Source of the DNA: Rebecca billardiae RCC1528
Lineage: Eukaryota > Protista > Haptophyta
Assembly (NCBI GenBank): GCA_965240325.2
Contig: OZ251253.1
Span: 372,001 to 436,000 of the forward strand
Direction: 5' to 3'
DNA length: 64,000 nucleotides
Shown piece by piece: positions 14,271 to 58,569 of this stretch (positions within the stretch are counted from its first letter, which is position 1; every line of letters begins with the position of its first letter). Position numbers and translations under genes: made by a program. The notes beneath the pieces were generated by a model, which saw only the letters and a list, made by a program, of their open reading frames with translations, had not been told where the DNA came from and did no database searches.

Positions 14271-14416
14271 GGCGTGTTGAGCCTCGGGCGCGGAGGAGGG
14301 CGCGGCGACCGAGATTGCGCCGACCGTCCTTCCGCATGCGCCCGGATCGGCACCTCGAAATCCGGGTTGAAAACTGAATGACCGCTCCCGGTGGACTTGC
14401 AACTCTGCATCGGACG

Positions 14417-20870: not shown

Positions 20871-22559
20871 TCATCCGCGCAGCAGCTGGCTCTCGAGCGT
20901 GCGCGTGTACTCGAGCTGCGCCGGCGCATGCGATGCTGGCCCGTCGGCGTCGGTGCTGCTGCGCCGGCGGTCAGGGGAGGCGGGGTGCGGACTGGGTCAG
21001 TACCAAGTGAGAGAGGCGGTGCAGCGTGCTGGGCTGCTGGCTGGCGCAACAGTCGCACCGCGCGCCGGCGCGCGCATGCGTGGGCGGCGACATGGGCGAG
21101 CTGCAGCGCACCTGGAGCCAGCGTCCGCCACCTCGGCGCTCAGCACCTGGCGCAGCACGCGCACGCGCGCAGGGTCCGCCACGTGCTCCGCCACGCGCTC
21201 GGCCGCCTGCAGCCGCGCGCGCACGCCGCGCAGCTCGGCCTGCAGCCGCTCGACTAAACTCTCGCGCGCATGCAGCTGCATCTTCAGCTCGACGATCGCC
21301 TCCACCGCAGCGGCAGCCTCGGGGGTCTCGCCGCTGGCAGCTGGCGACCCGGTGTGACCACCGCCATGCGGGTAAGGGTGCTCGACGCTCGTCACGAGCG
21401 TCGCGAGGAGCGGCGGCGGCTCAGCACCGCTCTCACCGGCAGTGTCGGCCAGCGTGTCCGTGGGAACAGGCGGCGCACCCGCGTCCACACGCGCACCTGC
21501 TGCCGAGCCGATGCCAGCGCTGGCAGACGCAGGGTGCTCGATGGAGGGTGGCATGGCGAGCTGCGCGTGCGCAGGAGCTGGCTGCACCGCATCGGCGGCA
21601 GCGGCTGGCCCCTGCTCAGCCGCGCGTGCAGAAGGGCGGCGTGAAGGCGGCGGCTGCTCGGAGGCGGGCTCCGCTGCTGCTGGTCTGTGCGCAGCCACGC
21701 TCGTGTACTTGCGCTTCACGCAGCGCTCGTTACGCTCGCGCTCGTCCGGCGTGGGGAAGTTGAGCCGTTTGATGCCCACCAGGTGACGCTTGCGCACGAG
21801 TGCATCGTACGCGCGCGCGGCCTCCTCCGCCGTGGCATGTATGCCGGCATAAAGCTTCTTACCGTTGTGATTGGCCTTTCCCACCCATGGCCGTGACCCT
21901 GAGGCACTGGAGGTAATCCCCACAAAGCCGTGGCTCGAGGCATGTGCGGCGTGGCTGGCCTGCAGCTCGAGCTCGCGCTCGTGCGGGGACGGGAAGTTAA
22001 GACGCTTCACGCCGACGAGGCCCTTCTTGCGCACGAGCGCGTCGTACGCGCGCGCAGCCTCGGCGGCAGTCGCGAACATTCCAGATGCGTGGTATTGGAC
22101 GCTGTTTTGTGATACTCTTGCGCGCCACCGCCCCGTCTGTGCATGGTACCACACGCCAAGGAACTCGGAAGGCGACACGTCGCCCATGTTGGCAGGCTGC
22201 TCGCGCTCAGCCCCACCTCCAACCACCGTCTCCGCGGCATCGCCCTCGCCCTCCGTCTCCTGGTTGTAGGGCGTGGCCGCATCTCGCGGCCAAGCGTCGG
22301 TCGAGCCGGACGCCACCCGCTGGGCAACCTGTGCCGCGAGCAGCGCGTGCACCGCGCTGGCGCCTTTGGTCCGGCCGCCACGCGACTCGAGCACCATCGA
22401 GTGCCTCGCCCTCTCGTTCGCGCCTTCAGCCTCGCGCACGCCTGACGCTGGCAAGGCCGTGGCGTCGTCAGCGCGAGCGTCGGCGTTGGAGCCGCCGAGA
22501 CCGAGCTCGCGTGATGCCGACGGAGCCGACGCCGGTGGCATGCAACTCGCCGCCATCAT
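20871..22559 (-). CDS. Double-AP2 domain DNA-binding protein, copy 5
   Basis: Open frame with two AP2 domains and the conserved tail. Terminal exon ..LEYTRTLESQLLRG*. Confidence 0.8.
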
Positions 22560-22919
22560 CCTTCAATAATCCGCGCCGATCATTCGCGCATGCTCGATTT
22601 GTTCACGTTGTTCACTGTGAATTCACTGTCAATTTCCAAATTGACTTGTGTGGGGCCGGTGCACACGAGCCGAGCTGGGCAGCCGCTCCGCCAGTGAGTA
22701 GGGGGCCCAGCTGCGTCAGGCTGCCGCACAGCGGCCGTCGCGTACGCTGAGCTGCCGCTGCCCAAAGTCGGTCAGCCAGTTTAATGCTGGAGACCATGCT
22801 ACGGTATGCTGGGCATGGACGGGTGATCGTCGAAAGGACGCATCGCTGATGATGCCTAATTGCGGCCCGGTCTGGGTGTGTCAAGTCATCTGCTGCTCAC
22901 TGCGCCGCCGTGGCATGCA

Positions 22920-24624
22920 CTAAGACGGCGGCGCAGCATGGCTGCGAAGAAGCTGGCGTTCGAGCGTGCGCGTGTACTCGAGCTGTGCGCGAGCAGGTGA
23001 TGCCAGCCCGTCTGCGTCTGTGCTACTGCACCAGCAGCCAGGGCGCAGGGCAGTTGCGTGCGGGCCACACAGGCAGGGAGGAAGATGAGGGGTCATCGCC
23101 AAGCACACTGGTAGGCGCAGTTGTGGTAGCGCATGCACAAGAGCGGGCAGCGCGGCGCCGCAGAGCGGCCACGCACCTGGAGCCAGCGCCCGCCACCTCG
23201 GCGCTCAGCACCTGGCGCAGCACGCGCACGCGCGCAGGGTCAGCCACGTGCTCCGCAACGCGCTCGGCCGCCTGCAGCAGCGCGCGCACACCGCGCAGCT
23301 CGGCCTGCAGCCGCTCGACTAAACTCTTGCGCGCATGCAGCTGCATCTTCAGCTCGACGATCGCCTCCACCGCAGCGGCAGCCTCAGGAGTCTCGCCGTC
23401 GTGCGTGGGCGGCGCGATGTGAGCGTCATGTGGGTAAGTGTGCTCGGCGCTGGTCACGAGCGTCGCGAGGAGCGGCGGCGGCTCAGCACCGCTCTCACCG
23501 GCAGTGTCGGCCAGCGTGTCCGCGGGAACAGGCTCACCCGCCTCCGCATGCGCACCTCCGGCAGAGCCGACGCCAACGCTGGCAGGCGCATGGTGCTCCG
23601 TGGAGGGCAGCGTGCCGGGCTGCGCAAGTCCGGCAGCTGGCTGCACCGCATCGACAGCAGCGGCTGGGCCTTGCTCCACCGCGCGTGCAGAAGGGCGGCG
23701 GGCAGGCGGCGGCTGCTCGGAGGCGGGCTCCGCTGCTGCTGGTCTCTGCACGGCATTGATGGTGCACCTGCGCTTCACCGGGCAGCGCTCGTTGAGGTCG
23801 CGCTCGTCTGGCGTGGGGAAGTTGAGCCGTTTGATGCCCACCAGGTGACGCTTGCGCACGAGTGCATCGTACGCGCGCGCGGCCTCCTCCGCGGTGGCAT
23901 GTGTGCCGGTGCGTACACGCTTATAGTTGTGAGAGACAGCTCCTTGCCATGGTCGTGGGCCCGCCTGGCTGCTGGAATTACAGGAAATCCCCACAAAGCT
24001 GTGGCTCGAGGCCCGCGAGGCGCGACCTGCCTGCACCTCGAGCTCGCGCTCGTGCGGGGACGGGAAGTTGAGACGCTTCACGCCGACGAGGCCCTTCTCG
24101 CACACGAGCGCGTCATACGCGCGTGCCGCCTCGGCGGCAGTCGCGAACAATCCAGATGCGTGGCATTGGACGCCCTTGTGTGATACTCTTGCGCGCCACC
24201 GCCCCGTCTGTGCATGGTAGTGCACGCCAACGAAACCAGAACGCGACACGTCGCCCATGCCGGTGGGCTGCCCGCGCTCGTCCCCACCTCCAACCACCGT
24301 CTCCGCGGCATCACCCTCGCCCTCCGTCTCCTGGTTGTAGGGCTTGGCCGCATCTCGCGGCCAAGCGTCGGTCGAGCCAGACGCCACCAGCTGGGCAGCC
24401 TGTGCGGCGAGCAGCGCGTGCACCGCGCTGGCGCCTTTGGTCCGGCCGCCACGCGACTCGAGCACCATCGAGTGCTTGGCCTTCTTGTTCGCGCCTTCAG
24501 CCTCGCGCTCGCTTGGCGCTGGCAGGTCCGTGGCGTCGTCAGCGCGAGCGTCGGCGTTGGAGCCGCCGAGACCGAGCTCGCGTGAAGCCGACGGAACCGA
24601 CGCCGGTGGCATGCAACTCGCCAT
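22920..24624 (-). CDS. Double-AP2 domain DNA-binding protein, copy 6
   Basis: Open frame with two AP2 domains and the conserved tail. Terminal exon SSTDADGLAS..LEYTRTLERQLLRSHAAPPS*. Confidence 0.8.
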
Positions 24625-24907
24625 CGTTCAATCCGCCGAGCATTTGCGCATGCGGGCATGCGCAGCGGGAGTCCGGCGCGAATCACCGCAACTAACTACG
24701 AGTCCGTGGCGCCGTGCGGGTGCTGCTGGTAAGTCTCTGCTGCTGAGTCTGGTGATAACTGGCACAACCGGCCTACCGGGCCCGGCAGCACCAACGGCGA
24801 CTTGTACGTAGCGGCTTGGGCGGACGAATGGCGCGCACCGCGACATGACTACTATATCAGCATATATCCCCCACACCATGCGCAGTAGCGCGCACCAGCA
24901 CTCGCCG

Positions 24908-40111: not shown

Positions 40112-41336
40112 CGCGGGCGGGGCGAGAGACGGCGGGACGGGCGACCCGTCGCCGCGACCTGCGCTGCTGCCCCCGGAGTGTCACCACTGTCACCTGACGG
40201 CGCGCAGCCGCGGTCAAGCTGCCTGCTGCCGGCGCTGCCGCCGCCGCGCCACGCGCACTACTTGGCGGACGACAGCCGCGCGCGCCGCCAATTCGCGACG
40301 CCGCTGGACTGCAGCACGCGCGGGCTACGTAGGCGCGCGAGGACGACGCGATATCGCCTATCGGCGGACTGAGGAATGACTACTCGCACGACGGCACGAT
40401 GACGACGGACATGCGCCGTAGCAGTAGTAGTAGTGCCAGCATATATGTGGCGTTATAGGGAATCGTCTATAACTAATAACTGAGTAGTGTCTATGAGCAA
40501 CGCGCCGCCAAGAATATCCGGCTCGCATGGCATCCCGCCAGCGTTCATCACTGATATATGCGTTGTCCGCTGCCGCGCCTCGCCGCGCCGCCAAGGCGGC
40601 AAGGAGTCCTGGTGTCCGGCTGGTGCCGCTGCCAATCATCCGACGACCCGCAGCAGCGCACATGCAGGACTCGGTTTGTTAAGCTCGTCGCTCATCGAGG
40701 CCAAGCTATCGGGGCGAAGCTTCCGGCTCGTGGGGCGCATGGGCTGCGCGCTTGCGACGAAGGCGCCGCCGAGCTGGGCCGAGGGGGATCGCTTGCATAG
40801 TGCATCGGATCGGCTCACTCACGGCGGTGCCGACTCTCTGACCACGGAGGTGCACCGGGTCCGACCGGGCAGCCCCTCTGCTCGGTAAGGCCGCTGGCTG
40901 TCCGTGTGGCCTGTCTCCCCGCCTCATCGTTCGGCGGCGCGACTACATCATCCGTGTCCGTCATTGCTCGCCGCGTCGCCCCTCATGCAATGCCCTCTTG
41001 CTAGTCTCGGCCGCTGTTGCGTCAACCCGCCGCACGATTCGGCATCGCGTTTGATGTGATCATCGTTCCTTATATATATATATTGATCGTCGTCGATCTA
41101 TCATCGTGGCGGTCTACCTCACGACGCCGCGCGCCACGACCATCCAGCTCCAGTCGTACCCGACTCAGTCATCACTCGATCATCACCATATACGAGCCGG
41201 GCATATGATGGCGGAGTGGCGGCGGCTGCTAGACACGACAGTACGCCTCCGGCCGGCGCGCAGCATCCCGCCAACGACGACAAGTGTACGACGAAGTGTA
41301 CCGCGGACCGGCGAGTCGCGACGACGCACCGGACTC

Positions 41337-41436
<100 letters not shown>

Positions 41437-43336
41437 ATAATAAATATATACGACGTACGATACCGTACTGCATGACGAGTACGCGACGCGCGCGATTATA
41501 GCGCATATATATATATATGACCGCGTTCCGCGGTCCTTCCGTAGAACCAACGTAGTTAGAGGCCCGCGGTGCACCCTCCGTTGCGCCTCGTGCCGGCAGA
41601 GCGAGAGCGCGCGCCACTGCTGCGGCCCCGCCCCCCGGGCCCGTGCGCTCACTCACGGCGCTGCGCAGCCGCGCACCGAGAGGCGAGACCGAGCGCGGAG
41701 CTCGGGGTGGAACGAGGCGAGCGGCGGGTCGCGCCTGCCGCCGCGCGTGCGCGCCTGCTCCACCGCGCCACCGTGCAGCGTGCTCGCCCGCCGCCTCCTC
41801 CGCCGCGTCGGCCTCGAAGCAGCGGCGGCCAGCCAGCCGACCGAGGCTGAGCCCGTGCGTGCTCACTCACCCGGCGCGGTGGCGCCCTCGAGTCGACGGC
41901 CGTCTACTCCACAGCTGGCTGCTCGAGCTGCTGCACGGGGCGTCGCGACGAGGGCGCCGCGCGCGCCCAGCCAGCGCGTCCGTCGCCGCGTCGCGCACGG
42001 CGCAGCGCGTCGAGCTCGGCGCCGCGCTTCCGGGCCAGCTCGGCGCCCAGCGCCTGCGCGCGCACGTGCTCCGATGCACGGCCCGAGTCAGCTGGGCGCC
42101 CGGCTGCGCGACCGAACGGGAACCGGCGCGCGTTCCACGACTGTCACTGCTCCTGCTTGTCCTCACGCTGCTGCACCTCCACGCCGCCGTCGACCGAGTT
42201 GCTAAGGAGGAGCTCGCGCTCGACGTCACGAGGAGCGAGCTCGCGTGCTCGAGCTCGCCCTTCAGCCGCGCTAGCTCCGGGCGCATCCGTTGCGTGCTCG
42301 CGGCGCGCTCCTCCTCTAGCAACGAACGAGCTTACGCGTAGTGCTCCGGACTCGGCTCGCCTTTGCGTGCTCCTCCTCGAGGACGAACGCGCCCGCGCGG
42401 GCAGGGCCCGCGCCCGGGTAAAAAACCTGCTGTGTTCGGCCTCGGCCCTCGGGCCGCCATCCAATACCGGGTGCCCAAGGGAGGTCCTCCCTTGGGGTGC
42501 CGTTCGTCATAGTTCAGACTCGGCCAATCGGTAATCGGATGCGACGCATCATACTCGCCGGGAGCGCAAAGGTTTACGTCGTCAGTAAAGTTGAGTACTT
42601 GACGAGACTTTTTGCCAGGAGCCCAGGACCTCCATCGCACGCGCTTGGGTCCTCGTCCTATTTGGCAACATTATGGTCGTATGAAGATTTACAACAAATC
42701 GCAGATTATTCGTTCACCCAGATATACTGACAAATGCACGTCCACAGGCTCACGTCCGTCCGTAGATACGGAATTGGAGCGGGCGCGGCTATTTCGTCAA
42801 TCGAGTCTTGCTAATGCAAAGCAATGGGCCAATGTACCCCTCGAAAAAGCGAAAACTCACCCTCCAACAGCCCTCAAAATCGTCCCCCGTCCCCTTTTCT
42901 TTGATCAAAAGATCTTTTTGACAACGTAGTGAGGGCCCCCGGCGGGGCTCCACGCTACGCGTTCCGCCCTGCACCGCGGGCCATGATGCATGCGCGCTGG
43001 CTACTGAATGATCGGCGGACAGTTGCTGAGTAGGCCTGCAGGGCGCGCCACGGACCGCCTTAAGCTGGCGCCGCCTCAGCCAGTAAGTGACTGACCGCCC
43101 GCCTGCCGTATCATAAAGAGGCAGCAGGGCGCGTCAGGAAGCGCGGCCCGCGCGCGTAGGCCAGGCCGCGGCAGCGGGCCGCCTGCGCTGCGAACGTGCG
43201 GTGAAGTGCGGGGCTCCTAGTAAGCGGTGGTCACAGTCCGGACGCTCCCGGTATCTCATCCGGTATCTCATGCACCGCGCGGCGGCGTGTCGCGCGGCGG
43301 CGCGCGTGGCAGCAGGCAGCTCAGCTGAGCAGCCGA

Positions 43337-46267
43337 CTACGACGCGCCGCCGCCGCCGTGCTGCTGCTGCTGCGCGCCCGCCTCGAGCGCCGCGCGCAGC
43401 TTGGCCGCGTCCGCCGGCTCGAGCGCCTGCTCCAGCGCGCCGACGATCTGCGCGGTCGCCGGCTGCGAGCGGAGGGCGGCGAGCAGCGCGGCGGCGCGCG
43501 CGCGCGTGCGCGCGTCCGCCGCGCCCGAGTCGACGGCTGTGGCGATGTAAAGCAGCTGCGTCGCGACCGCGTGCGCGCGCTCGCCGCCCGCGCCGAGAAG
43601 CTCGGCGCCGCGCGTCTCGGCGAGCGTGCACAGCTGCGCGTGCACCACCTGCGCCTCGAGCAGGTCGGCGCGCACCGGCAGGTAGCCTGCGGCGCGGCGG
43701 CGCGGCGGCGCGGCGGCGCGGCGGCGCGTGCGCGCGTGCGCGCGCGCGAGGCGCGTGCGCGAGTGAGCGCGCGCTGCTGCTGCGCTGCGGAGGGCTGGGG
43801 GGGGGCAGGGGCGGGGGCGAGGGGGGCGGCGCGGCGCAGCGGAGGAGGGCGGGCGGCGGGCCAAGGGCGGCGCGGCGCGCCCGGCCGCACCGAGGAAGAT
43901 CGGCAGCAGCGCCTCTGCGCTCACGACGGGCGCGCGGTGCAGCAGCAGCTTGCCGAGTGCAGACACCGCGTTGTCGGTGGCGGACTCGTTATCCTCATTG
44001 CGCGCGTCCGGCGCCTGGACGACCCCCACGAGCGTCTGCGCGGCCTCGAGCACGGCCGCGTCGGCGAGCGCGCCGCGCGCGTGCTCGGCGAGCACGCCGA
44101 GCCCGTAGCACGCCGCCTGCCGCACCTCCGCCGCGGCGTCTGTGGCGTAGCGCAGCAGCAGCGGCAGCGCTGGGCCGATGTAGGGTGCGGAGCCGCCGTC
44201 GGCGGAGCAGTGCCTGCGGCGGCGGCGCGAGGGCGGTGGGGTGGCCGCGCGGCGGGGCGGGGAGGCGAGCTCAGCGCGCAAGCGAGGCGGGCGGGCGGGT
44301 TGCAGGCGGGGCGTGCGGCTGTGCGGCGGTGCGGCGGCGGTGCGGCGGCGGTGCGGCGGTGCGGCGGTGCGGCGGTGCGGCGGTGCGGCGGTGCGGCGGT
44401 GCGGCGGTGCGGCGGTGCGGCGGTGCGGCGGTGCGGCGGTGCGGCGGTGCGGCGGTGCGGCGGTGCGGCGGTGCGGCGGTGCGGCGGCGCGCGCGCGCGC
44501 GTGCTGCGCACTCGGCGATGTCATCAAAGACACAAAGGGCGGCCGTGCGGTCGTTGGGCGTGCGATCTGGCGGGAGCAGCGTCTGCCGTGCGTGCGCGTG
44601 CGCGTGCGTGTGCGTGCGCGTGTGCGTGTGCGCATGGGGGCGGGCGGCGCGGGCGCAGGCACGCGCGTGCGCGCGTCAGTGCGTCACGGCGCCCGCCGCG
44701 CGACACCGCGGGCGTGCGCCCGCGCCGCCACGGTGCCGCGCGGCCGCAGTGCCGCGTTGCGCCGCATGCGCCCCCGCCTCCCTCGCACCCGCACTGCCCC
44801 CGTGCCCCTTGCCCCGTGCCCCTCGCAGGGGCAGTGCCCACCTCGGCACTGCCCAGCGGGGGCACTGCCCTAACCCGCACCGCCCACCAGGCGCAGTGCC
44901 GCGGTGGGCGCGCGGGTGCCGCAGTGGGCGCGCGCGGGTGCCGCAGTGGGCGCGCGCGGGTGCCGCAGTGGGCGCACGGGTGCCGCGGTGGGCGCGCGGG
45001 TGCCGCGGTGGGCGCGCGGGTGCCGCGGTGGGCGCGGCCGCACCTGTACGACGCCCATCAGGTGCTCGTTCAGGTGCGGCAGGAAGGCGGACCTGTAGAC
45101 CTTGATGTACCGCCCGACGCACTCGACGATCGTCGAGAGCAGCGACTCCTCCTCCACGTCCGCGCCGTCGTCCTCCTCCTCCTCCTCGTCCGCGCCGCGC
45201 TCCGCCGCCGCCGCCGCCGCCGCGTCGCGCCGCCTATCCAGCGACTCAGTCGCCGCCGCGCCGAGGGCCTTGGCCGCCGCGCCGATCTGCTCGGGCGCCT
45301 GCGCGCACGAGGCGTGCGTCTCGCCGAGCTCGACGAGGGACGAGAGCGCGTCCACCAGCGAGGAGAGCGTCTGCGAGCGGCGGCGCATGGCGGCGGCGGC
45401 AGCGTCGGTGCGCGGTGGCGCGGCGCGACGCGCGGCGGCGGCAGCAGCAGCGGCAGCCGCGCCGGCATGGGGGGGTGGGGGGGTGGACGGTTGGCGCGGT
45501 GGCGGGCGCGCGCGGGGCGGCGCAGGCGCGTCCACCGCGCAGGCAGGCGGTGCGCGCGCGCGCGCGCACCGCCGTGTCGTCCTCGTCGCCGATCTGCTCG
45601 AGCAGCTTGGCGAGAGCGAAGCCGAGCGTCTGACGAGTGAGCTCCGCCGATGCGTTGGGCGCGCCCGCGCCCTCCGCGAGGGCTGTTGCTTCGACGAGCG
45701 CCGGCAGCCCCCCCGCCGCGGCCGAGCGCACCTCCTCGTGGTAGTCGAAGCCCACCAGCTCCGCCAGCACCGGCAGCACCGCGCCCACGTGCGGGAAGAA
45801 GCCACCCTTCAGCTCGGCCGCGTACGCAGCGAGCATCGTACACGCTGTCGCCTTCTCCTCGAGGGCGGCGGTGCGGATGGAAATGCGCTTGTTGCCCACG
45901 CCGGGGATGGTCACCTCCACGGACTCGACGCCCTCCTCGTCCTGGCGCGCGCGGCGTGCGTGTGTGTGGTGCGTGTGTGTGTGAATGAGTGTGTGCGTGT
46001 GTGGTGGGCGCGCGGGTGCCGCGGTGGGCGCGCGGGTGCCGCAGTGGGCGCGCGGGTGCCGCAGTGGGCGCGCGCACGCCCCCACCTCCTCCGGCGCGGC
46101 CACCGCCTCGTCCGCGTCGGTGACGCTCAGCTCGGGGTCGACCTGCGCCGAGGCGAGCAGCGGCGGCAGCACGTGCGGCAGGTACGGCACGAACCCCTCG
46201 CCCAGGCACTTGCAGATGCGCGCGCTCGCCTGCAGCATGAACGCCATCTGCGCGTCGTCCTCGGGAG

Positions 46268-46300
<33 letters not shown>

Positions 46301-49300
46301 GCGACTGCGCGTGGATCATGGCCTCCATCACCGCGGCGGCGTGCGGCGCGAAGGTCTCGCGCCCCACCGCGAGGCCGATCAGCGAGACGCACTCCATCGC
46401 CTTCCCCTGCAGCAGCCGGTACTCCGGCCCCTGATTCGCCTGCAGGATCGCGAGCAGTCCGGGCACGAATGTCTCATAGTACTGACTAAACGCGCCCTCC
46501 ACGACGTCCGCAACCGACGCGACGGCCGTGACCGCCTGCTCCTGCACGTGGCGCACGCCCGAGCGCAGCAGCTCGAGCAGCTGCGCGCGCGCCGAGCGGC
46601 GGGCGGGCGGGCGGACGGGCGGCAGCCGCGCGTTCGGGTGGGGTTAGGGTTAGGGTGGTTCGGGTTAGGGTTAGGGGGTAGGGTTGGGGGTAGGGTAAGG
46701 GCACGCCCTCGGCAGGTGCGGCGGCGGCGCGCTCGCCCGCACCTGCGTGAGCAGCGGCTCGAGGTACGGCTCGAGCGTGGGGCGCGCGCAGTGCTCGCAG
46801 AAGTTGATCACCGCGGACGCGGCGTGCCCCTGCACGCGCGCCGACCCGTCCTGTGCGGGACGCAGGCGCAGGCGCGGCGCAGGCGCAGGCGCGCGCGCGC
46901 AAGGGCGGCGGAGGCCGGGGGGCGGGCGCGCGCGGTGTCAGCCGGCTCGTCCACCGCCGCCACCGCCCCGCACACGCGCGCACACACACGCACACGCTCG
47001 GCCCCCCAACATCCACCCACCCACACGCGCGCGGCACGCGCGGGGGGGGGAGCGCAGAGCGTGGCAGGCAGCGCGCACCCGCATGGTGGCGATCAGGGGC
47101 GGCACCAGCAGCGCATGAAACTGCCGCTGCAGCGCTGGGCCAAAGTCGGTGGCCATCTGGCCGATGGTGTTGACGGCGGCCCAGCGCACGCGCGGGTGCG
47201 GGTCCTGCAGGTTCGCCACCACCATCTGCACGACGGAGCCCAGCTGCTTCGACAGCTGCTTCGCGCACCCCTCCCCCGCCTGCGAGATCGCAATCAGGGC
47301 CGCGTGCCGCTCCTTCCAATTGGCCGAGGCGGCGAGTTGGCCGATTCGCTCGAGCAGCACGGGGAGGCAGGCCTTGCCGCCGAGCGCGATGGAGAAGCGG
47401 TCGAGCGCCTCCGAGCCCACGTCGTAGTCCGAGACCGACGCGTCCTCCTCGTTCTCCCCCGCCGCGGTCTCCCACTCCGCCACCTCCGCCGGCGTGTCGC
47501 CCTCCACCTGCGCCCGCGGGCCAATATGGGCAGATGCGGGCAAATGCGGGTAAATGCGGGTACGGATGCATGGTGCGGTACACGTGCGGGCGAAATGGGC
47601 GAGAGGGGGGCGTGCGTGCGTTGCGTGGACGGGCGGAGGCGGGTGGGCGGGAGGCGCAGGGCGCGGGGGAGCCACGGCACCGCGCTGCCGCCCAGGCGGC
47701 CGCGCGCGCGCGCGCCACGCGCCGCCGCCCCTTGTGCCCGCGCCCGCCGCCGGGCGCCCCGCCCCGCCGAGCCCGCCCAGTCCCCCTGCGGGCGGGGGGC
47801 GCGCGGCGGGCCGGGCGCGGCACGCGGCGCACCCCCGCGCACACGACACGCCACCCCGCCCGCCCCTCGCACCCCTCCCCCCCCCCCTCCTCTGTGTGTG
47901 TGTGTGGGGGGGGGAGGGTACGCATGCGCGCACACACGCGCGCACCCCCCCCCTCCCCCCACCGCTCCGCTCAGGCCACCCCCCGCGCGCACACCCGCCT
48001 CCCCCCGCCACCCCCCACCCCGCTGGGGAAAGCCCCGGACGCGCCCTCCGCGCAGGTGGCGGGAGCCCTCCCAGGCGCGCCCCCCCGCCACACGCGCGCA
48101 CACACACCCCTCACACACACACACTCCTCCTGCGCAGGAAACTTCCCGGAAGCTTCCCGCGAGGCGCGCGGCGCGCGCACACCTCGAGCATCATGCGCAG
48201 CGCCAGCGGCAGCACGGCGGCCGGGAAGCCGTCGATCTTCTTCACGATGGCGGGCGCGGCCTCGGCGAGGGTGAGCATGCACTCGAACGCGAGGTGGCGC
48301 GTCGGTTCGTCCAGCTGCGCCGCCGACGCCACGGCGAGCAACGCGTGCACAAGGGCGGACGCGTGCGGCTTGAGGAAGCGCGGACAGTTCTCGGAAAGTT
48401 CCACAAAGGTCTCGAGGGCGTCGCGCGCCTCGTCCTCCGCCGAGGCGTTGAGCGCGGTGGAGACGACGGCGAGCATGTGCGGCACGAGCTCGGCGTACGG
48501 CGCGCGCTCGGCCGCGCTGCCCAACGCTTGCACCACCGCCGCCACCGCCTGCACCGCCGCCACGCGCACCGCCGTCGATTCACCCTCGGCCAGCGAGCGC
48601 GCGAGCGTCTGCTGCAGCGTCGGGCGCGCGTCGCGCAGCGCGGGGCGCGCGAGCGGGCCGGCGAGCTCGGCGAGGATGTGCATCGCGGCCTCGTGCAGCC
48701 CGGCGTTGCCGCTCGTCGCGCAGCGCAGCACGAACGGCAGCAGCCCTTCCCAGCCGAGTGGCGGCGGCGGCGGCGGCTCCGGCTGCCCCGCCTGCTGCGC
48801 CGCGATCGCTGCCTGCGCGTGCGCGGCGCTCGACGCCTCGGCGCACTCCCACGCGAGCTGGCTCACGGCGTCGCTGATCTTCTTGCGCAGCGAGCTGCGC
48901 TCCGCGGGGCCGCCGGGGCGCGGGCGTGCGCGCCGGGCCGGCGCGCGCGCGCGCACGCGGCGGCCCGTAAGCGCGGCGGCGGCGCGGCGCGGCCGCGGGC
49001 GGCGGCGCGCGCGGGGCCGCGCGGCGCGCGGCGCGCGGCGGGGCGCGCGCACCGCTCGGGCTCGACCTCGAGCGCGGCGAGCAGCTCCGCCTTGAACTGC
49101 TCGAGCAGCCCCGGGCTCAGCCGCGCGATCAGCTTCGTGGTCGTCGTTCGGGCCTGCTGCTGCTGCTGTAAATCGGTGCCGGCGCCGCCGCCGCCGGCCG
49201 CCGCCGGCACCGGAGCAAAGGAGGAGGCGACGCGGCGGGCGAGCACGGCGCAGAGCTGGCGCACCTGCGGGGGGTGGGGAGAACGCGGCCGCATGCCGTG

Positions 49301-49665
49301 GCGGGGGAGCAGCCCGCCGCGCACGCCAACACGGTCGGACATGCGAGCGCGCGCGCGGCCGGCGTGCGCGCGCGCGCCGGGGCCGCGCGCCGCGCGCCGG
49401 CCGCGCGCCGCGCCGCTCCGCGGCGCGCGGGTGGCCGGCGGCGAGCGCGAAGGGGAGGCCGCGAGCGCACCGCGCGGCGCGCGCGCGCGCCGCCCACCTG
49501 CGTGTCGTGGCTCGTGCGCAGCAGCGTGATGAGGCAGGCGAAGAGCGTGTCAGGCTGCTCCTTCGCCTGGTTGAACGTGCGCTCGGCCGCGCCGCGCGTT
49601 TCGTTGTCGGGCGACATGAGCGCGCGGACGAGCTGCTCGAAGCTCGCGACCGCCGCGGGGTCCAT
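43337..49665 (-). CDS. IPO5: Importin-5 / karyopherin beta-3, multi-exon
   Basis: LMSPDNETR.AAE, EALDRFSIALGGK, WKERHAALIAIS..GEGC, DPHPRVRWAA, GKAMECVSLIGLAVG, IRTAALEEKATAC, YHEEVRSAA, EVRQAACYGLG and ATDNAVSALGK. Confidence 0.95.
44323..44488. repeat. 8-bp-based minisatellite (GCGGCGGT)n in importin intron
   Basis: Directly visible. Confidence 0.9.
44896..45036. repeat. ~19-bp minisatellite GTGCCGC(A/G)GTGGGCGCGCGG in importin intron (also 46004-46072)
   Basis: About 7 copies here and 3 in another intron of the same gene. Confidence 0.85.
46641..46701 (+). repeat. Intronic degenerate (TTAGGG)n telomere-type repeat
   Basis: gggTTAGGGTTAGGGtggttcgggTTAGGGTTAGGGggTAGGG..TAAGGG in an importin intron. 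Confidence 0.85.
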
Positions 49666-49982
49666 GGTGGCGGCGGGGCGCGAGAGGCGGGCTGCTGCGG
49701 CGCGGCCGCCGCGCGGCTGGGTGGCAGGGCACGGGCCGCCTGGCGCAGGGAGGAGCGTCCGCGCTTTGGACTCCGCGTGAGTACGCGCCACTCGCCACCC
49801 GCTGCAGCTGGGGGCGCCACCGCGGACTGCGGCAGTGGCTGGACGCCTGGACCGGCCTCGGGCCTCCCGGACTGGGTACAGTATTCACTATTCAACCAGC
49901 AGGTGCGCAACTTGCAGCCACCGCTCTCTGGGCAGTCGCAGTGATCGCACCGCCGCCCGCGACCGAACCGCGCGCGCCCCCC

Positions 49983-50654
49983 ATGGACGACACGCGCCGC
50001 GTGATCGCGCCCGGCGCCGCGGCGGCGGAGGGCGAGGCGGACGCGGCGATGGACGGCGTGGCGGAGCCGGAGGAGCCCCTCGACGCCGACGCCCTCCCCG
50101 CCCGCCCGCGCCGCCACGTCGAGCGCAAGCAAGGCTCAGAGCCTTACATCGTCAGGGAGCGGGTTGCGGTCGTCGGCATGTCGGCGGCGGTCGGCGCGGA
50201 CCTGCCGCCAGAGCCGGCGCCGCGCCGCGGGCGCGACGTGGACAGGAGGCCGCCGTCCACCTCCAGGCCCTCCTCCGCCCCGCCGCGCGGCCGCGAGCGC
50301 TCCGTCGCCCAGGAGATTGGCGGCGCGCTGCGCGGCGCTCGCGCGGTGCGCGCGCGCGCGTCGGGTGGCTCCACCGACCTTCGCGTCTCCGTCCTCGCCG
50401 GCGGCGGCGGCGGCGGCGGCGTGGGCGGCGGCGGGATCGGCAAGGCCTCGCGCGGCGCCGACCTGCGCTCGCAGATCGGCAAGTCGCGCCGCCTCGGCGG
50501 CCCCGCCACGCCTGCCGGCCGCGGCGGCCGCTCGCCGCTTCCGGCGGCGGCGCGCGGCGGCGGCGGCGGCAGCGCGGCCGTGCCGAGGCGCGCGCCGACA
50601 GACCCGTCGCGCGCGGACGGCAAGTGGGAGCACGACCTGTACTACCAGCTCTGA
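49983..50654 (+). CDS. Low-complexity RG-rich protein with C-terminal WxHD motif (ALYREF/CASC3-type), putative mRNP-associated factor
   Basis: ATG 49983 lies head-to-head with IPO5. EPY, repeated DLR motifs, RGG, and terminal DGKWEHDLY. Confidence 0.55.
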   Translation: MDDTRRVIAPGAAAAEGEADAAMDGVAEPEEPLDADALPARPRRHVERKQGSEPYIVRERVAVVGMSAAVGADLPPEPAPRRGRDVDRRPPSTSRPSSAPPRGRERSVAQEIGGALRGARAVRARASGGSTDLRVSVLAGGGGGGGVGGGGIGKASRGADLRSQIGKSRRLGGPATPAGRGGRSPLPAAARGGGGGSAAVPRRAPTDPSRADGKWEHDLYYQL

Positions 50655-51902
50655 CCCCCCTTCCCCCTCGGCGACACCCGCCGGCGCCGACCGGCGCGGC
50701 GGCGGCTGCGCCCGCCGGCAGCGGTGCGGCACGCCTGTGCATGGCGCGTTGGCCCGTGTGCGCTGTGGCGAGCGCGCACGGCCGGCCGTCCGTGCCGGTG
50801 GCTGGGCAGCAGCATGGCCGGCCGTCCGTGCCGGCGGCTGACCAGCAGGTTGCGTGGCGTCTTGCGGCGGTGGCGGCGCCTGGCTGCCCAGTGGGTGCCG
50901 GCCTACCCGCACGCGGGCTGTGCACGAGACCGGCCGACCGGGCTGCCGGCTGGCTGGCTCGGGCCCACCGCTGCGGCCGCCTCAGTCCTGGCAGGCCTCC
51001 GCCCGCGCGCCCGCCTCGGACTCGGAGGCGCGCGCGTCAGCCGGAAGGCAACCACACTTGTCGTCGTCGCGGAGCCGGTCATATCACATATGGCGCAATA
51101 CTCGACTCGCGGATCATCGCGGACGCCAACTACGGCATCATCATCATCGTCATCATTACTGCTGCTAGCAGGCCCCTTATCGTCCCCTGACGAGAAGGTT
51201 ACATCCGCACACCTACTAGACGCTGATAGTAACACCTAGTACGACGCGGAGGATAATCAGATTCGTCACTGGAGACAACGAAACATCCGAAGGCCTCAAA
51301 CCACACACACACAAATATATATATAATTTAATGTCAAAATATATAGAACACAAAATTAAAAACCAAAATAAAATTCATGCACCATTTACGCATGCCAACG
51401 GCATCATGATCATTTTTATTACTATCTAAATTTTATTTTGATAGTAACATTGTTATTACTAACTAGTATAATGACGTTGTTACTGCTATAGTTAGTAACA
51501 TTGGTAGCTATCTCGGTAGTGACACTGTCACTACTAAGCTAGATCTATACTTCAATCTATACATGCTATAATACTATACTTCAATCCCGGTCAGTCATCT
51601 CAGACATTGATAGATAGATATCCGACTCGAGTCGTCTCGGCGTCTGTCATTCTCTTGAAAGTTATTCTGGCGTCCGCCGGAACAGTCATCAGCATAGTCT
51701 AGCTGCTCTCTCTCTCTGTCTCTAGCTAAGCTGCTACTAGAATCATTATCATCATCATCATCCATCATCATCATCATCATCATCATCATCGTCGTCGTCT
51801 GAATAGTAAAGCTTGTTACAAAGTACGACTACTAAATATACTAACTTTAGCGTGTATCTGTGAAGTCCTGTCTAACTACCCGTTCGACCGCCTATGCCCT
51901 AT

Positions 51903-52365
51903 CCGGACGGGGCATCGAGCTCGAGCCAGGCCCGCATCCAGACCTGCGTGTAAAGTTGCAAAGTGTAAAGTAGGTCCGGGAGCCCAGCCGGACTTGTCCG
52001 GCCAGTCCGACCGGACGCGTGCGGCCGGGCCGTGCCAGCTGCCACCGGGCCCGGCACTCTCCGGCGCCTCCGCCCGGCGCCGGCCGGTCGCCGGGGCGCC
52101 GCGGCCGAGAGGCAGTGCAAAGTTGTAAAGTGTAAATTACATCCGGGAGCCAGGCCGGACCTATCCGGACAGCCGTCCGGCCACGCACGCGTGCGGGCTG
52201 TGCCGACGCGCCGCGCCGGCCGGCTGCCGGGCGCACGAGGGCGTGTATGACAGTGTGAAAAAGTAAATCCGGGCGCCTCCGGACGGGGCATCGCGCGCCG
52301 CGCAAGCTGCTTGGCCCAGCAACCCCCCGTAAAAGTTGTAAAGTGTAAAGTAGTAAGTCCGGGGC
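51903..52365 (-). repeat. Short diverged inverted copy of the 199-bp satellite (about 4 TGTAAAG-motif blocks)
   Basis: GTGTAAAGTTGCAAAGTGTAAAGTAGGTCCGGGAGCCCAGCCGGAC.. closely matches the reverse complement of the right-arm unit. Confidence 0.9.
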
Positions 52366-52754
52366 TTTCGCGGGTCCAATCCGGGATCCCGCAGCCCGAG
52401 CGGCGGCGCGATGTTCGCCGCCATGGTCGATGGTGTTCGCAAGCACGTTCAGAAGCCGCCCGCCCTCGACGACGCGATCTGCACGTGCGCGCGTTGGTCA
52501 GAGCACACGCGTGACGTGGGTGAGTCGGGGGACTACCCACTACGAAGCAAAGTAGAGCGTGAAGCAAGGTAGAGTGTGTTTCCGCGTGCGCGCTCGGGCA
52601 GCTCTGCTGTGACCCCTCGGCCACGTCGTGATGTGTGCGTCCGCGCGCACGGCCACGCCAGCGTGGCCAGTGCGCTTCCTCTTCAACGACACCAACGAGC
52701 TCGCCCTGGCGCACAACGTTGGCAGCAGCGCCGTGACTACACGGCTGCTGGTGG

Positions 52755-53305
52755 TGCGCGTGTCCGGTTGGCCACACCCTCGTGACTCTGCGGCTGCGCG
52801 CAGAAGCAGCGCCACCGGCGTGCTGCTGCCTGCCGGCATGCTGGTGGCGCCCGCGCCCGCGCCGCCGCCGCCATTTTGTGACCGTCCCACAGTGCGCCCC
52901 GCTGCATGCGCCTTGTGGCGCGCGTCCGGTTGGCCACAGCCTCGTGACTCTGCGGCTCTGCGGCTGCGCGCACAAGCAGCGCCACCGGCGTGCTGCCGCT
53001 GCCGGCATGCTGATGGCGCCCGCGCCCGCGCCGCCGCCGCCATTTTGTGACCTTCCCGCGCCGTGCGCCCCGCTGCATGCGCCGTCTGGGGCGCGTCCGG
53101 CTGACCGCAGCCTCGTGACTCTGCGGCTGCGCGCGCAAGCATCGCCACTGGCGTGCTGCCGCTGCTCGCATGCTGATGGCGCCCGCGCCCGCGCCGCCGC
53201 CGCCATTTTGTGACCTTCCCGCGCGGTGCGCCCCGCTGCATGCGCCGTCTGGGGCGCGTCCAGTTAGCCACAGCCTCGTGACTCTGCGTCTCTGCGGCTG
53301 CACGC
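52755..53305 (+). repeat. Internal tandem repeat, ~163-171 bp x 3.3 (a diverged extra copy near 54055-54200)
   Basis: CCTCGTGACTCTGC recurs at 52778, 52940, 53111 and 53274. GCCGCCATTTTGTGACC recurs three times. Confidence 0.9.
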
Positions 53306-53307
53306 GC

Positions 53308-53870
53308 ATCTACCGCGGCGGGCTGCGCCTGCTGTTCACGGCCAAGGCGGACGGCGAACCCCGTACATCCCCGCCGCGGTCGTTGCCACCGCCGGCGACG
53401 GCGTCGTGCGCTGCGAGTGGCTTGCGCGCCTGCCCGCGTGGCACGCCCTCCGCACGCACCCGCACTGTGCCCGCGGCTTGGCCCACACGCGTGCACAACG
53501 AGGCGGTCGAATGGGCAGCGCGTGCGTAGACGGCACCTGCGCCGTCGGGTCAGCGCCGCCCGTGCGCCGGGCGTGCGCACCTTCCCGCCTCGCCAGCTGG
53601 CGCGCGAACCGCCCTCGCCGCGTGGCTAAACGAGCAGCTCGGCTCGCGCGGCGCGGGCGAGCCGATCAGTGCGTGCCCGGCGGCGCCGGGCGCTGGCCGC
53701 CGATTACGCGCGTGTACGCGGGGCGCTCGCCGGGTCTACTCGCGACGTGCTCGACGGCGAGTCGATGGTGTGACTACAAGCGCAGTGAGCACTGGCGGCG
53801 GATTGTCTTCTACTTCGCCAAGCTAGACGGCATCGACCTCTGCTGCGTGGACGACGCGTGTGTCCACGCG
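53308..53870 (+). pseudogene. Decayed archaeo-eukaryotic primase (PrimPol / NCLDV-herpes clade) C-terminal half with CHCC zinc finger
   Basis: IYRGGLRLLFTAKADGE (53308-53358), then a frameshift into PYIP (53361), then SRWCDYKRSEH-x17-CVDDAC (53760-53861), i.e. C-x6-H-x17-C-x4-C. Confidence 0.6.
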
Positions 53871-54502
53871 CACGGCCGCGCAGGCGCAGCTGCCGTGCGC
53901 CTTCGTGGCTTCCTTTTGACGGTGCCGACGGGCTCGCCCCCTCACCACGCGTGGCCTGCGCGGCCGTGCAGCGTGGGCACGGTGGCTCGCGCGGCAAGGC
54001 GCCGGTTGCGCGCTCGCAGCAGTTTGCAGCCCTCCGGCGCGCGGCGTTTGCTGCAGCGCCGTGACCACGCGGCTGTGGGCCGCGCCACTGGTGCTGCTGG
54101 CCGCCGCGGCCATGCCGCCGCCGCCATGATACGACCTTTTCGCGCTGTGCGCCCCGCTACACACAGCATGCGTGGACGACCGCGCTGCGCCTCGCGCCAA
54201 ATGGCGCCCAGCAATACGGATGCGCACTGCACACTGCGTGCAGCGGGTTGAACGGCCCTGGCTGTGGCGTGCAACGTGCGCCGTAGAGGCGTGACTCGCC
54301 AGCCCGCGGCGGGCGTAGCGCGCGCACGCACGGGCGAGCAGCACTACTGCGTGTTGCTCAGCCGCGCCCGCGCCGCGCCATCGGTAGGTGGTGGCGCCCT
54401 CGACCGGTATCGAATCGCCCTCCCTCACCTACCTCCCTCGCCCGGGCGGGTCGATCGCGGGCGCCGGCATCGCGATCAAATCGCGTCCGGCCGCGTCGTC
54501 CC

Positions 54503-57500
54503 GCCCGGACTTACTTTACACTTTACAACTTTACAGGCCCTCTCGCGCCCGCGGCCCGGCGGCGGCGCGGCGGCCGGCGGGCCAGCATGCGTCCGGTCGG
54601 ACTGGCCGGACATGTCCGGCCGGGCTCCCGGACCTACTTTACACTTTACAACTTTACACGCCGGGCTGGGTGCTGGCCTGGCTCGTGCTCGATGCCCCGT
54701 CCGGACGTGCGCTCCCGGACTTACTTTACACTTTACAACTTTACAGGCCCTCTCGCGCCCGCGGCCGCGGCGGCGCGACGGCCAGCATGCGTCCGGTCGG
54801 ACTGGCGTGACATGTCCGGCTGGGCTCCCGGACCTACTTTACACTTTACAACTTTACACGCCGGGCTGGGTGCTGGCCTGGCTCGTGCTCGATGCCCCGT
54901 CCGGACGTGCGCTCCCGGACTTACTTTACACTTTACAACTTTACAGGCCCTCTCGCGCCCGCGGCCGGCGGCGCGGCGGCCAGCACGCGTCCGGTCGGAC
55001 TGGCCGGACATGTCCGGCTGGGCTCCCGGACCTACTTTACACTTTACAACTTTACACGCCGGGCTGGGTGCTGGCCTGGCTCGTGCTCGATGCCCCGTCC
55101 GGACGTGCGCTTCCGGACTTACTTTACACTTTACAACTTTACAGGCCCTCTCGCGCCCGCGGCCGGCGGCGCGGCGGCCACGGCATGCGTCCGGTCGGAC
55201 TGGCCGGACATGTCCGGCTGGGCTCCCGGACCTACTTTACACTTTACAACTTTACACGCCGGGCTGGGTGCTGGCCTGGCTCGTGCTCGATGCCCCGTCC
55301 GGACGTGCGCTCCCGGACCTACTTTACACTTTATACAACTTTACAGGCCCTCTCGCGCCCGCGGCCGGCGGCGCGGCGGCCAGCACGCGTCCGGTCGGAC
55401 TGGCCGGACATGTCCGGCTGGGCTCCCGGACCTACTTTACACTTTACAACTTTACACGCCGGGCTGGGTGCTGGCCTGGCTCGTGCTCGATGCCCCGTCC
55501 GGACGTGCGCTCCCGGACTTACTTTACACTTTACAACTTTACAGGCCCTCTCGCGCCCGCGGCCGGCGGCGCGGCGGCCAGCACGCGTCCGGTCGGACTG
55601 GCCGGACATGTCCGGCCGGGCTCCCGGACCTACTTTACACTTTACAACTTTACACGCCGGGCTGGGTGCTGGCCTGGCTCGTGCTCGATGCCCCGTCCGG
55701 ACGTGCGCTCCCGGACTTACTTTACACTTTACAACTTTACAGGCCCTCTCGCGCCCGCGGCCGGCGGCGCGGCGGCCAGCACGCGTCCGGTCGGACTGGC
55801 CGGACATGTCCGGCCGGGCTCCCGGACCTACTTTACACTTTACAACTTTACACGCCGGGCTGGGTGCTGGCCTGGCTCATGGTCGATGCCCCGTCCGGAC
55901 GTGCGCTCCCGGACCTACTTTACACTTTACAACTTTACAGGCCCTCTCGCGCCCGCGGCCGCGGCGGCGCGACGGCCAGCATGCGTCCGGTCGGACTGGC
56001 CGGACATGTCCGGCTGGGCTCCCGGACCTACTTTACACTTTACAACTTTACACGCCGGGCTGGGTGCTGGCCTGGCTCGTGCTCGATGCCCCGTCCGGAC
56101 GTGCGCTCCCGGACTTACTTTACACTTTACAACTTTACAGGCCCTCTCGCGCCCGCGGCCGGCGGCGCGGCGGCCAGCACGCGTCCGGTCGGACTGGCCG
56201 GACGTATCCGGCTGGGCTCCCGGACCTACTTTACACTTTACAACTTTACACGCCGGGCTGGGTGCTGGCCTGGCTCGTGCTCGATGCCCCGTCCGGACGT
56301 GCGCTTCCGGACTTACTTTACACTTTACAACTTTACAGGCCCTCTCGCGCCCGCGGCCGGCGGCGCGGCGGCCACGGCATGCGTCCGGTCGGACTGGCCG
56401 GACATGTCCGGCTGGGCTCCCGGACCTACTTTACACTTTACAACTTTACACGCCGGGCTGGGTGCTGGCCTGGCTCGTGCTCGATGCCCCGTCCGGACGT
56501 GCGCTCCCGGACCTACTTTACACTTTATACAACTTTACAGGCCCTCTCGCGCCCGCGGCCGGCGGCGCGGCGGCCAGCATGCGTCCGGTCGGACTGGCCG
56601 GACATGTGAATGTCCGGCTGGGCTCCCGGACCTACTTTACACTTTACAACTTTACACGCCGGGCTGGGTGCTGGCCTGGCTCGTGCTCGATGCCCCGTCC
56701 GGACGTGCGCTCCCGGACCTACTTTACACTTTATACAACTTTACAGGCCCTCTCGCGCCCGCGGCCGGCCGGCCGGCGGCGCGGCGGCCAGCATGCGTCC
56801 GGTCGGACTGGCCGGACATGTCCGGCTGGGCTCCCGGATGACCTACTTTACACTTTACAACTTTACACGCCGGGCTGGGTGCTGGCCTGGCTCGTGCTCG
56901 ATGCCCCGTCCGGACGTGCGCTCCCGGACTTACTTTACACTTTACAACTTTACAGGCCCTCTCGCGCCCGCGGCCGGCGGCGCGGCTGGCCAGCACGCGT
57001 CCGGTCGGACTGGCCGGACATGTCCGGCTGGGCTCCCGGACCTACTTTACACTTTACAACTTTACACGCCGGGCTGGGTGCTGGCCTGGCTCGTGCTCGA
57101 TGCCCCGTCCGGATCTGCGCTCCCGGACCTACTTTACACTTTACAACTTTACAGGCCCTCTCGCCCCCGCGGCCGGCGGCGCGGCGGCCAGCATGCGTCC
57201 GGTCGGACTGGCCGGACATGTCCGGCTGGGCTCCCGGACCTACTTTACACTTTACAACTTTACACGCCGCGGGCTGGGTGCTGGCCTGGCTCATGGTCGA
57301 TGCCCCGTCCGGACGTGCGCTCCCGGACTTACTTTACACTTTACAACTTTACAGGCCCTCTCGCGCCCGCGGCCGGCGGCGCGGCGGCCAGCATGCGTCC
57401 GGTCGGACTGGCCGGACATGTCCGGCTGGGCTCCCGGACCTACTTTACACTTTACAACTTTACACGCCGGGCTGGGTGCTGGCCTGGCTCGTGCTCGATG

Positions 57501-57690
57501 CCCCGTCCGGACGTGCGCTCCCGGACTTACTTTACACTTTACAACTTTACAGGCCCTCTCGCGCCCGCGGCCGGCGGCGCGGCGGCCAGCATGCGTCCGG
57601 TCGGACTGGCCGGACATGTCCGGCTGGGCTCCCGGACCTACTTTACACTTTACAACTTTACACGCCGGGCTGGGTGCTGGCCTGGCTCAT
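54503..57690 (+). repeat. Satellite: 16 x ~199-bp units, each with two copies of CCCGGACYTACTTTACACTTTACAACTTTACA
   Basis: One motif phase starts at 54631, 54831, 55029, 55229 ... 57635. Spacing alternates ~87 and ~111 bp. Confidence 0.97.
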
Positions 57691-58569
57691 GGTCGCGCCA
57701 GCCAGATCAGTCGCGCGCGCGCGGCGGCACTGCGCGCGCGCGGGGCGCGCGTGCCTTTCCTAGAAACTTCCGCAGAGCCGCGAGAAGGTTACACTTTACA
57801 TAGTGACAGGGCTGGACCAGGCTTACTAGTTACACATAGGAGACCACGACGTTACATATAGGAGGCATAGGCTACATTTCTACTATACGGCTTTTCTGGG
57901 GGGTGTAACCTTCTCGTGACAGGACCACCACCAGCAGGCCCGGATGACGACTCCGCCGACGATATATATATGATGACGATGATGATGATCGCGTCATCAC
58001 GAGCGCGGGCCTGCCGGCGCCGGCCTGCGCGAGTGCCGCGGGATGACGACGACGGAGAATATATTCGCAGCGCGCTGCTGACGATCCGCCGGCGGTCGGC
58101 GCCGCTGCTAATGGATGGCACGCCCGCAGACGCAGTACCGGCAAGAGTACCGACGGTGCGGACGGTCTGAGCGCACCCGCCTGCGCCGCCGTGACGACAC
58201 GACTGCAGGCTTGTGATGCGGTTATGACGGGAGGCTTATTCTATTCGATCATGCGCATCATAATCAGCATCAGCAGGCATCATCAGCCTGCTGCGCACTG
58301 TGCTGAGCTGCGCTGACGACGCGATCATCTCGGCCGCCCGAGGCGCCCACCTCACCCGCCCGAACCCACCCCACCCCAGCCCTCACACCTCACCCCCACG
58401 CACGTCACGGCAGCGCATTGGCCGCGGCGCAGGCCACGCCCTCGAAGCCGCCGCTGGCCCCACCGAGCGCCGCGGGTGCCGACGGCGGCGGCGCCGGTGT
58501 CGCGGACGGCGGCGGCGGCGGCTGCGCGGGCGCTCCTGCTGCGGCGCGGCGCGGCAGGCGCAGCGCCTA

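Follow-up and report, generated by a model that had tools for sequence, protein, structure and literature searches.

We analysed a 64,000-nucleotide stretch of DNA from Rebecca billardiae RCC1528 (contig OZ251253.1, positions 372,001 to 436,000; hereafter the window, with positions counted from its first base) and found that it carries a real, recently mobile insertion at 51176–57932. On balance we read this insertion as a cut-and-paste DNA transposon that is non-autonomous and of foldback type, and that belongs most likely to the Mutator/Foldback (Mutator-like element, MULE) kind. The element family is new, the general kind being already known. An earlier, sequence-only reading of the window had proposed a transposase-less, foldback-like element bounded by terminal inverted repeats, which the inverted arms and the lack of any transposase domain bear out.

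The ends of the element were fixed by an allele that lacks it. Of 20 window ORFs submitted to exact look-up, only that of its right-hand neighbour gave a match. The protein, P0005, is also encoded, in identical form, on two public short-read contigs (Logan), L006 and L007. The latter, a contig of 3,314 bp from run ERR14847148, aligns over its positions 1–2553 to window 60481–57933 (99.8%) and over 2545–3314 to window 51175–50406 (100%), so that window positions 51175 and 57942 are directly adjacent and AGCAGGCCC, the 9-nt overlap of the two alignments, stands only once. In the window the same 9 bp stand twice, in identical copies, directly outside the stretch that L007 skips (Table 1). The element thus ends at 51176 and 57932, and the ends given by the sequence-only reading, 51191 and 57916, lie 15–16 bp too far in. 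A perfect 9-bp direct repeat around a stretch absent from the other allele is the signature of a target-site duplication. Since a k-mer assembly cannot join two regions over a mere 9-bp repeat, we infer that reads must span the empty junction. The possibility that L007 is a spliced transcript was also considered and rejected: a splice would not call for a direct repeat of 9 bp, and the contig follows the window through intergenic DNA and through genes of both strands.

Between the empty and the filled allele, the flanking sequences diverge by at most 0.25%. The unique core of the element is covered by contigs L001 (run ERR14847149) and L008 (run ERR14847150), which are 99.3–99.5% identical to the window and 99.8% identical to each other. 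The empty site is found in ERR14847148 (ERR14847151 was uninformative), and the insertion is therefore polymorphic among genomes about 0.1–0.5% apart. The low divergence of the flanks, the perfect duplication and 13-mers (see below) and the 96% homogeneity of the right array suggest that the insertion is recent.

Each end of the element contains the perfect 13-mer CGAGAAGGTTACA, at 51191–51203 on the plus strand and at 57904–57916 on the minus strand, with a TGA adjoining each copy, just as the sequence-only reading had described. The true ends of the element are 15 and 16 bp further out, and the two copies form the inner parts of longer, imperfect terminal inverted repeats, which pair at 21 of 28 positions and leave the outermost ~7 nt unpaired; the ends of the element read CTTATCG... 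and GGTGGTG.... The TGA triplets, which had been taken for a 3-bp target-site duplication, belong to the inserted unit, in the imperfect outer portion of its terminal repeat, and the duplication defined by L007 is the 9-bp AGCAGGCCC. The empty site for which a search had been proposed exists (L007, ERR14847148), but not with the sequence ..CCCCTGACAGG.. that had been predicted for it. A third, inward-facing copy of CGAGAAGGTTACA is present at 57781–57793 (plus strand), 110 bp from the right terminal copy, and runs directly into a CTTTACA motif. Because of this continuation, the terminal core and the motif of the arrays give the impression of being variants of a single site. The GGTTACA within the terminal repeat resembles the CTTTACA of the arrays.

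Inside the ends, the element is built of two arrays of one repeat in opposite orientation, short on the left and long on the right, and here too the sequence-only reading holds (51890–52375 and 54487–57695). The right array contains 29 perfect copies of the 24-mer TACTTTACACTTTACAACTTTACA, all on the plus strand and two to a unit, and the left array contains three copies with 1–3 mismatches on the minus strand (at 51949, 52116 and 52329). The 24-mer itself consists of three CTTTACA-type repeats. Inverted matches between the two arrays reach 148 nt, at 89–94%. The hexamer TTTACA occurs 93 times on the plus strand and never on the minus strand of the right array, six times on the minus strand and never on the plus strand of the left array, and four times in the other 57 kb. 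A single 198-bp unit shows no unusual degree of structure (z −1.7). The two arrays present mirror-image innermost units to the 2.1-kb core and, because the arrays mirror each other around the core, the two-fold symmetry of the element reaches well beyond the 13-mer. The array repeat was not seen elsewhere in the window, and exact scans of IMG/VR and of JGI metagenomes for the 24-mer were blank. The AT-rich tract of about 700 bp that had been noted next to the left end was recovered at 51204–51889, with 37–48% GC. It contains short internal repeats, such as two copies of TGATAGTAACA, and an (ATC)n run, has no open reading frame (ORF) longer than 64 aa, and has no similarity to the right subterminal stretch.

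Mutator/Foldback elements duplicate 9 bp of target (range 8–11), and 9 bp are duplicated here. Their composite terminal repeats also have a counterpart, in the form of a 13-bp core within ends of 28 and 29 nt followed, in subterminal position, by inverted arrays of 2.4 and 16 units. A MULE-type DDE transposase is absent from this copy. On the strength of the 9-bp duplication and the composite inverted arms, we infer that the element most likely belongs to the Mutator/Foldback superfamily. A like combination occurs in Tm1, a Mutator/Foldback element of root-knot nematodes, which makes 9-bp duplications, has composite terminal repeats of tandem repeats varying in length and asymmetric, non-pairing 7-bp outer ends, and includes transposase-less members with unrelated cargo (PMC3169594). 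With Tm1 and with FB-NOF of Drosophila the present element shares the 9-bp duplication and unequal arms of inverted tandem repeats; with Tm1 it further shares asymmetric outermost bases (motifs A1/A2 of Tm1), and many members of this group have, like it, unrelated central DNA and no transposase. In contrast to these elements, its repeat unit is 198 bp long rather than 10–31 bp, and no transposase-bearing relative of it is known, so that its membership is putative.

Several observations weigh against this assignment. No transposase was seen, which leaves the 9-bp duplication and the architecture as the grounds for the superfamily, and duplications of 8–9 bp can also come from Merlin and P-like elements. 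A single insertion of the element is known. The outermost ~7 nt of its ends are unpaired, which is unusual outside Tm1-like elements, and its arrays lie 0.24–0.7 kb inside the ends, whereas classical FB arrays reach the ends. Moreover, the parent gene of the presumed cargo was not found in the same organism, where the search returned the allelic copies P0001 and P0006 and could have missed longer parents.

We accordingly weighed whether the insertion is the same kind of mobile element from a DDE superfamily other than Mutator that makes 8–9-bp duplications, such as Merlin, a P-like or Galileo-type foldback element, or one as yet undescribed. No transposase is at hand to decide the matter, and Galileo is reported to show that foldback architecture arises also in the P superfamily. 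However, 9 bp is the modal value of Mutator/Foldback, and Tm1 provides a precedent for asymmetric outer ends together with 9 bp. We thus regard another superfamily as unlikely. Galileo and P elements, moreover, usually give duplications of 7–8 bp. For hAT elements, which were also considered and rejected, an 8-bp duplication would be expected in place of the 9 bp found, and no hAT domain is present. The sequence-only reading had compared the element to PIF/Harbinger and CACTA transposons, with which it does share terminal inverted repeats and subterminal repeated motifs. That comparison falls with the 3-bp duplication, and both groups are excluded because duplication length and ends differ: PIF/Harbinger elements duplicate a 3-bp TWA, in contrast to the 9 bp here, with TGA inside the unit, and CACTA/CMC elements have ends that begin with CACTA and a 3-bp duplication, in contrast to CTTATCG.../GGTGGTG... 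and 9 bp.

As a Mutator/Foldback element, the insertion would have been mobilized by a transposase encoded elsewhere, which would recognize the 13-bp core, and probably also the repeated TTACA-type sites, and would cut the target with a stagger of 9 bp. The right array would later have grown to 16 near-identical units by unequal exchange or slippage, turning one arm into a small satellite. A similar course is described for Tetris of Drosophila virilis, a foldback transposon whose tandem repeats seeded a satellite (PMC4079207). The likeness lies in the expansion of internal foldback repeats, here to 16 units in one arm versus about 2.4 in the other; organism and sequence are different, and in our window no spread of the repeat outside the element was seen. 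The 2.1-kb core, finally, would be passenger DNA captured from the host, as in Pack-MULEs, and not machinery of the element.

The core contains the remains of a gene, which begins about 35 bp after the left array and occupies the space between the arrays. On the plus strand of the core, GC1/GC2/GC3 periodicity of the coding type marks three patches, no two of them in the same frame. The longest piece of the relic, used as query in an exhaustive HMMER search, returned its own allele, P0001, together with two distant relatives: P0002, of 281 aa (E 2.6e-10), and P0004, of 114 aa (E 1.4e-4). The clusters of the latter two add P0007 (335 aa) and P0008 (220 aa); P0001 and P0006 are allelic copies of the relic, at 99%. 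In a frameshift-aware alignment, residues 40–263 of P0002 are colinear with window 53308–53936, the 3′ half of the relic, across three frameshifts and one in-frame stop, and P0002 stays in one frame over stretches that are spread across several frames in the window. In addition, a 163-bp unit is tandemly repeated about three times within the span of the relic. With about three frameshifts and one stop relative to P0002, and this repeat expansion inside it, the central gene is dead.

The relatives are all found on short contigs of ~67–71% GC, environmental or algal-like in character, whose sources are other read sets and one metagenome assembly (ENA analysis ERZ18668368, record name marked METAG); ERR4195064, one of these read sets, is cited in a paper on Swedish lakes. 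The relative P0008/P0004 on L010 (positions 1–800; ERZ18668368) is also broken: its conserved stretches switch back and forth between frames, and a stop interrupts the conserved IY..GLRLPF motif. The gene family thus decays in another organism as well. No relatives were found in plasmids or phages by tblastn, or in IMG/VR and JGI metagenomes by protein-pattern scan. A match in IMG/VR (L005, positions 949–1194; IMGVR_UViG_3300036948_000024) was rejected as a wrong-frame match within a GC-rich phage prohead protease/capsid gene. L005 shows that Cys-rich wrong-frame translations of GC-rich DNA can mimic this gene family. Positions 1–24 of contig L002 look like a sequencing-adapter remnant, and we presume its first bases not to be genomic.

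Neither arrays nor terminal repeats were seen at the loci of the relatives, whose sequence is not significantly similar to the arms of the element, and the inner 12 bases of the terminal 13-mer (GAGAAGGTTACA) are absent from those loci that were fetched. One relative, without arrays, lies about 200 bp from a convergent called ORF. A 9-mer, TCCCCTGAC, and a motif, AAGTCCGGG, common to the element and the relatives' loci, were considered and rejected, since about one such match is expected by chance and the local alignment scores fall within those of shuffled sequences. Because the relatives' loci are without arrays or terminal repeats, and one lies near a convergent ORF, we favour, as the most economical reading, that the dead gene is passenger DNA, presumably captured, rather than the element's own machinery. 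Inspection by eye shows a candidate GT-AG intron that would connect the first two coding-like patches, at the 5′ end, in a common frame, and a retained intron would fit genomic capture. The element would in this respect resemble the Pack-MULEs of plants, which are likewise non-autonomous, with a 9-bp duplication and a dead, cellular-looking gene piece whose intron is apparently kept. Unlike in Pack-MULEs, the parent gene was not found, and the terminal repeats comprise 13 perfect positions (about 28 in total) rather than 100–500 bp.

The sequence-only reading had identified the relic as a decayed PrimPol-like primase. The decay is evident from the alignments above; the primase label finds short motifs in its favour, all profile and structure searches being blank. 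No match was obtained in Pfam, PHROGs, NCBIfam or PDB sequences with the window pieces, with P0002, P0004, P0007 and P0008, or with a profile of three relatives (A2), and AlphaFold2 models of P0002 and P0007 were unusable (mean pLDDT 38 and 32, respectively). The motif evidence consists, first, of a putative zinc cluster in P0002, R-x-C-x4-R-x-H-x17-C-x4-C (R204, C206, R211, H213, C231, C236), whose Cys and His columns are invariant in alignments A2 and A3. The zinc finger of human PrimPol is formed by Cys419, His426, Cys446 and Cys451, with conserved Arg417 and Arg424 (PMC10415149). The Cys-His-Cys-Cys order, the arginines and, one loop apart, the spacing of P0002 are as in the human protein, a likeness that is a pattern match only; the differing loop, between His and Cys, has 17 residues in P0002 versus 19 in human PrimPol. 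Second, upstream of the cluster P0002 and P0007 carry the stretch V-D-A-C-I-Y-R-G-G-L-R-L-P-F-T-S-K, which resembles motif III (hDh); its aspartate is not present in the window copy. Motifs I (DxE/D) and II (SxH) were not identifiable in the 5′ patches of the window, and the contigs of the relatives end before that region. From these motifs it is plausible, with roughly even chances, that the dead gene is PrimPol-like.

Were the primase-like gene the element's own, the insertion would be the dead copy of a family of terminal-repeat elements that duplicate 9 bp on insertion and code for a protein of the AEP/PrimPol type, for which the inverted CTTTACA arrays would be the putative binding sites. 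The gene exactly fills the gap between the arrays, from about 35 bp after the left one; its family is rare, and the frame changes and the stop in a conserved motif of the L010 member are as in decaying genes of mobile elements; and, in the order and spacing of its residues, the Arg-x-Cys...Arg-x-His...Cys-x4-Cys pattern corresponds to the zinc finger of PrimPol. However, a primase alone accounts for neither the 9-bp duplication nor excision, and the blank primase searches, the unusable models, the flanks of the relatives and the absence of relatives from plasmids, phages, IMG/VR and JGI metagenomes all speak against ownership, which we therefore consider improbable. The replicon-like, self-replicating character that the sequence-only reading had attributed to the element has nothing in its favour beyond the arrays and the unverified primase label.

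The same empty allele could in principle have arisen in the opposite direction, if the element were resident DNA that had never transposed and that the L007 allele lost through a deletion between two chance 9-bp repeats. Chance pairs of 9-mers are, by our estimate, common in 6.8 kb of GC-rich DNA, and one filled and one empty allele are known. For such a deletion, however, chance would have to place the two breakpoints 15 and 16 bp beyond a perfect inverted pair of 13 bp, and in such a way that they also enclose exactly a compositionally odd, two-fold symmetric unit. Inverted pairs of 13 bp are expected by chance somewhere in 64 kb; by a simple count, we estimate the probability of a perfect pair 15 and 16 bp inside independently defined ends of an indel at ~1e-5. 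Loss by deletion is thus very unlikely.

Terminal inverted repeats with tandem arrays and a possible primase recall giant viruses, Polinton-like viruses and transpoviron-like plasmids, but that the element is what remains of such an integrated virus or virus-like element is hardly credible. It measures only 6.8 kb, half of it satellite, has no capsid, packaging ATPase, integrase, helicase or polymerase domain in any ORF, and its sole IMG/VR match is the wrong-frame match to L005 within a phage capsid gene. The sequence-only reading, too, had recognized no transposase, integrase or capsid, and neither the ORFs of the element nor its stop-to-stop pieces match these or any other families, artefacts apart. 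The artefacts are matches of Pfam families such as Carla_C4 to the translated satellite (54264–57861), in which the same 16-residue match is added up over the units and no single stretch would pass by itself.

Table 1. Features of the inserted element and of its immediate surroundings (window positions).
Feature	Positions	Strand	Basis or remark
Whole inserted element, 6,757 bp, 65% GC	51176–57932		exactly the stretch absent from L007; rest of window 73% GC
Target-site duplication AGCAGGCCC, left copy, 9 bp	51167–51175		once in L007, twice in the window; copies identical
Target-site duplication AGCAGGCCC, right copy, 9 bp	57933–57941		once in L007
Left terminal inverted repeat, 28 nt; outer 15 imperfect, inner 13 (51191–51203) perfect	51176–51203	+	21/28 pair with right end
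Right terminal inverted repeat, 29 nt; inner 13 nt (57904–57916) perfect	57904–57932	−	end fixed by L007
Left subterminal tract, AT-rich, 37–48% GC	51204–51889		window otherwise 73% GC
Left array, ~2.4 diverged 198-bp units, inverted relative to right array	51890–52375	−	inverted matches of 58–148 nt, 76–94%
Decayed gene relic	52411–53936	+	GC3 periodicity, HMMER relatives, frameshift-aware alignment
Unique GC-rich spacer, gene relic to right array	53937–54486		no family match
Right array, 16 × 198-bp units, 96% alike, 398-bp higher-order repeat	54487–57695	+	3.2 kb
Right subterminal unique stretch, with third 13-mer at 57781–57793 (+)	57696–57903		sequence comparison
Host inverted repeat, left arm, perfect 20 bp	51137–51156	+	partner 57970–57989
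Host inverted repeat, right arm, perfect 20 bp	57970–57989	−	partner 51137–51156
Left neighbour, importin-5-like gene (ORF is part of the gene)	48111–50132	−	Pfam TPR_IPO5 1.3e-26, Importin_rep_4 5.3e-10
Right neighbour, histidine-phosphatase gene P0005	58570–59496	−	Pfam His_Phos_1 4.6e-9

The element sits between two genes of the minus strand, ~640 bp past the stop codon of the histidine-phosphatase gene (P0005) and upstream of the importin-5-like gene, whose 5′ end faces it. Just outside the target-site duplications lies a perfect 20-bp inverted repeat. We considered whether the terminal repeat of the element extends out to it and rejected this, as the outer repeat is host DNA that is already present in the empty allele. 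There, its arms are 47 nt apart, with the insertion point within the loop, and the empty site (L007 2490–2600), folded as DNA, gives a strong predicted hairpin (−26.1 kcal/mol, z −4.3). The 20-bp repeat is of the (ATC)n type, with one interruption common to both arms.

The window as a whole is of eukaryotic character, with 65–80% GC, and contains tandem ORFs with AP2 domains, a CFAP65/HYDIN-like ORF and the two neighbouring genes described above; no tRNA or Rfam matches were found in it. The tandem array, at 10335–24630 on the minus strand, comprises six paralogous ORFs of 447–672 aa with a period of 2.1–3.8 kb and 60–90% identity; AP2-domain matches were obtained for four of the six, and an ORF for a polysaccharide pyruvyl-transferase (14378–15754, plus strand) lies within the array. 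Further repeats are present at 44297–44500, 44884–45056 and 45984–46092, where a long 8-bp microsatellite, (GCGGCGGT)n, and two minisatellite arrays of 20–22 bp sit in very GC-rich long ORFs without a family match. Patches of low GC (55–60%) occur also at 40300–41520, with (GA)n, (AT)n and ATC-type runs like those of the element flanks, and at 42400–42950, in unique sequence.

The above results provide a clean presence/absence insertion, with exact ends, duplication and empty site, in the very GC-rich genome of an alga-like flagellate whose mobile elements are, within the data covered, otherwise undescribed, and they show one arm of a transposon turning into a 3.2-kb satellite. They also point to a gene family, rare and unannotated, that has a PrimPol-like zinc cluster and escapes existing profiles. 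If its full-length members are primases, the profiles could be widened to include them; if they travel with such elements, primases and cut-and-paste transposons would be linked in a new way. Should the gene turn out to be the element's own, the insertion would represent an undescribed kind of self-priming or replicative eukaryotic DNA element, with relatives scattered in GC-rich algae.

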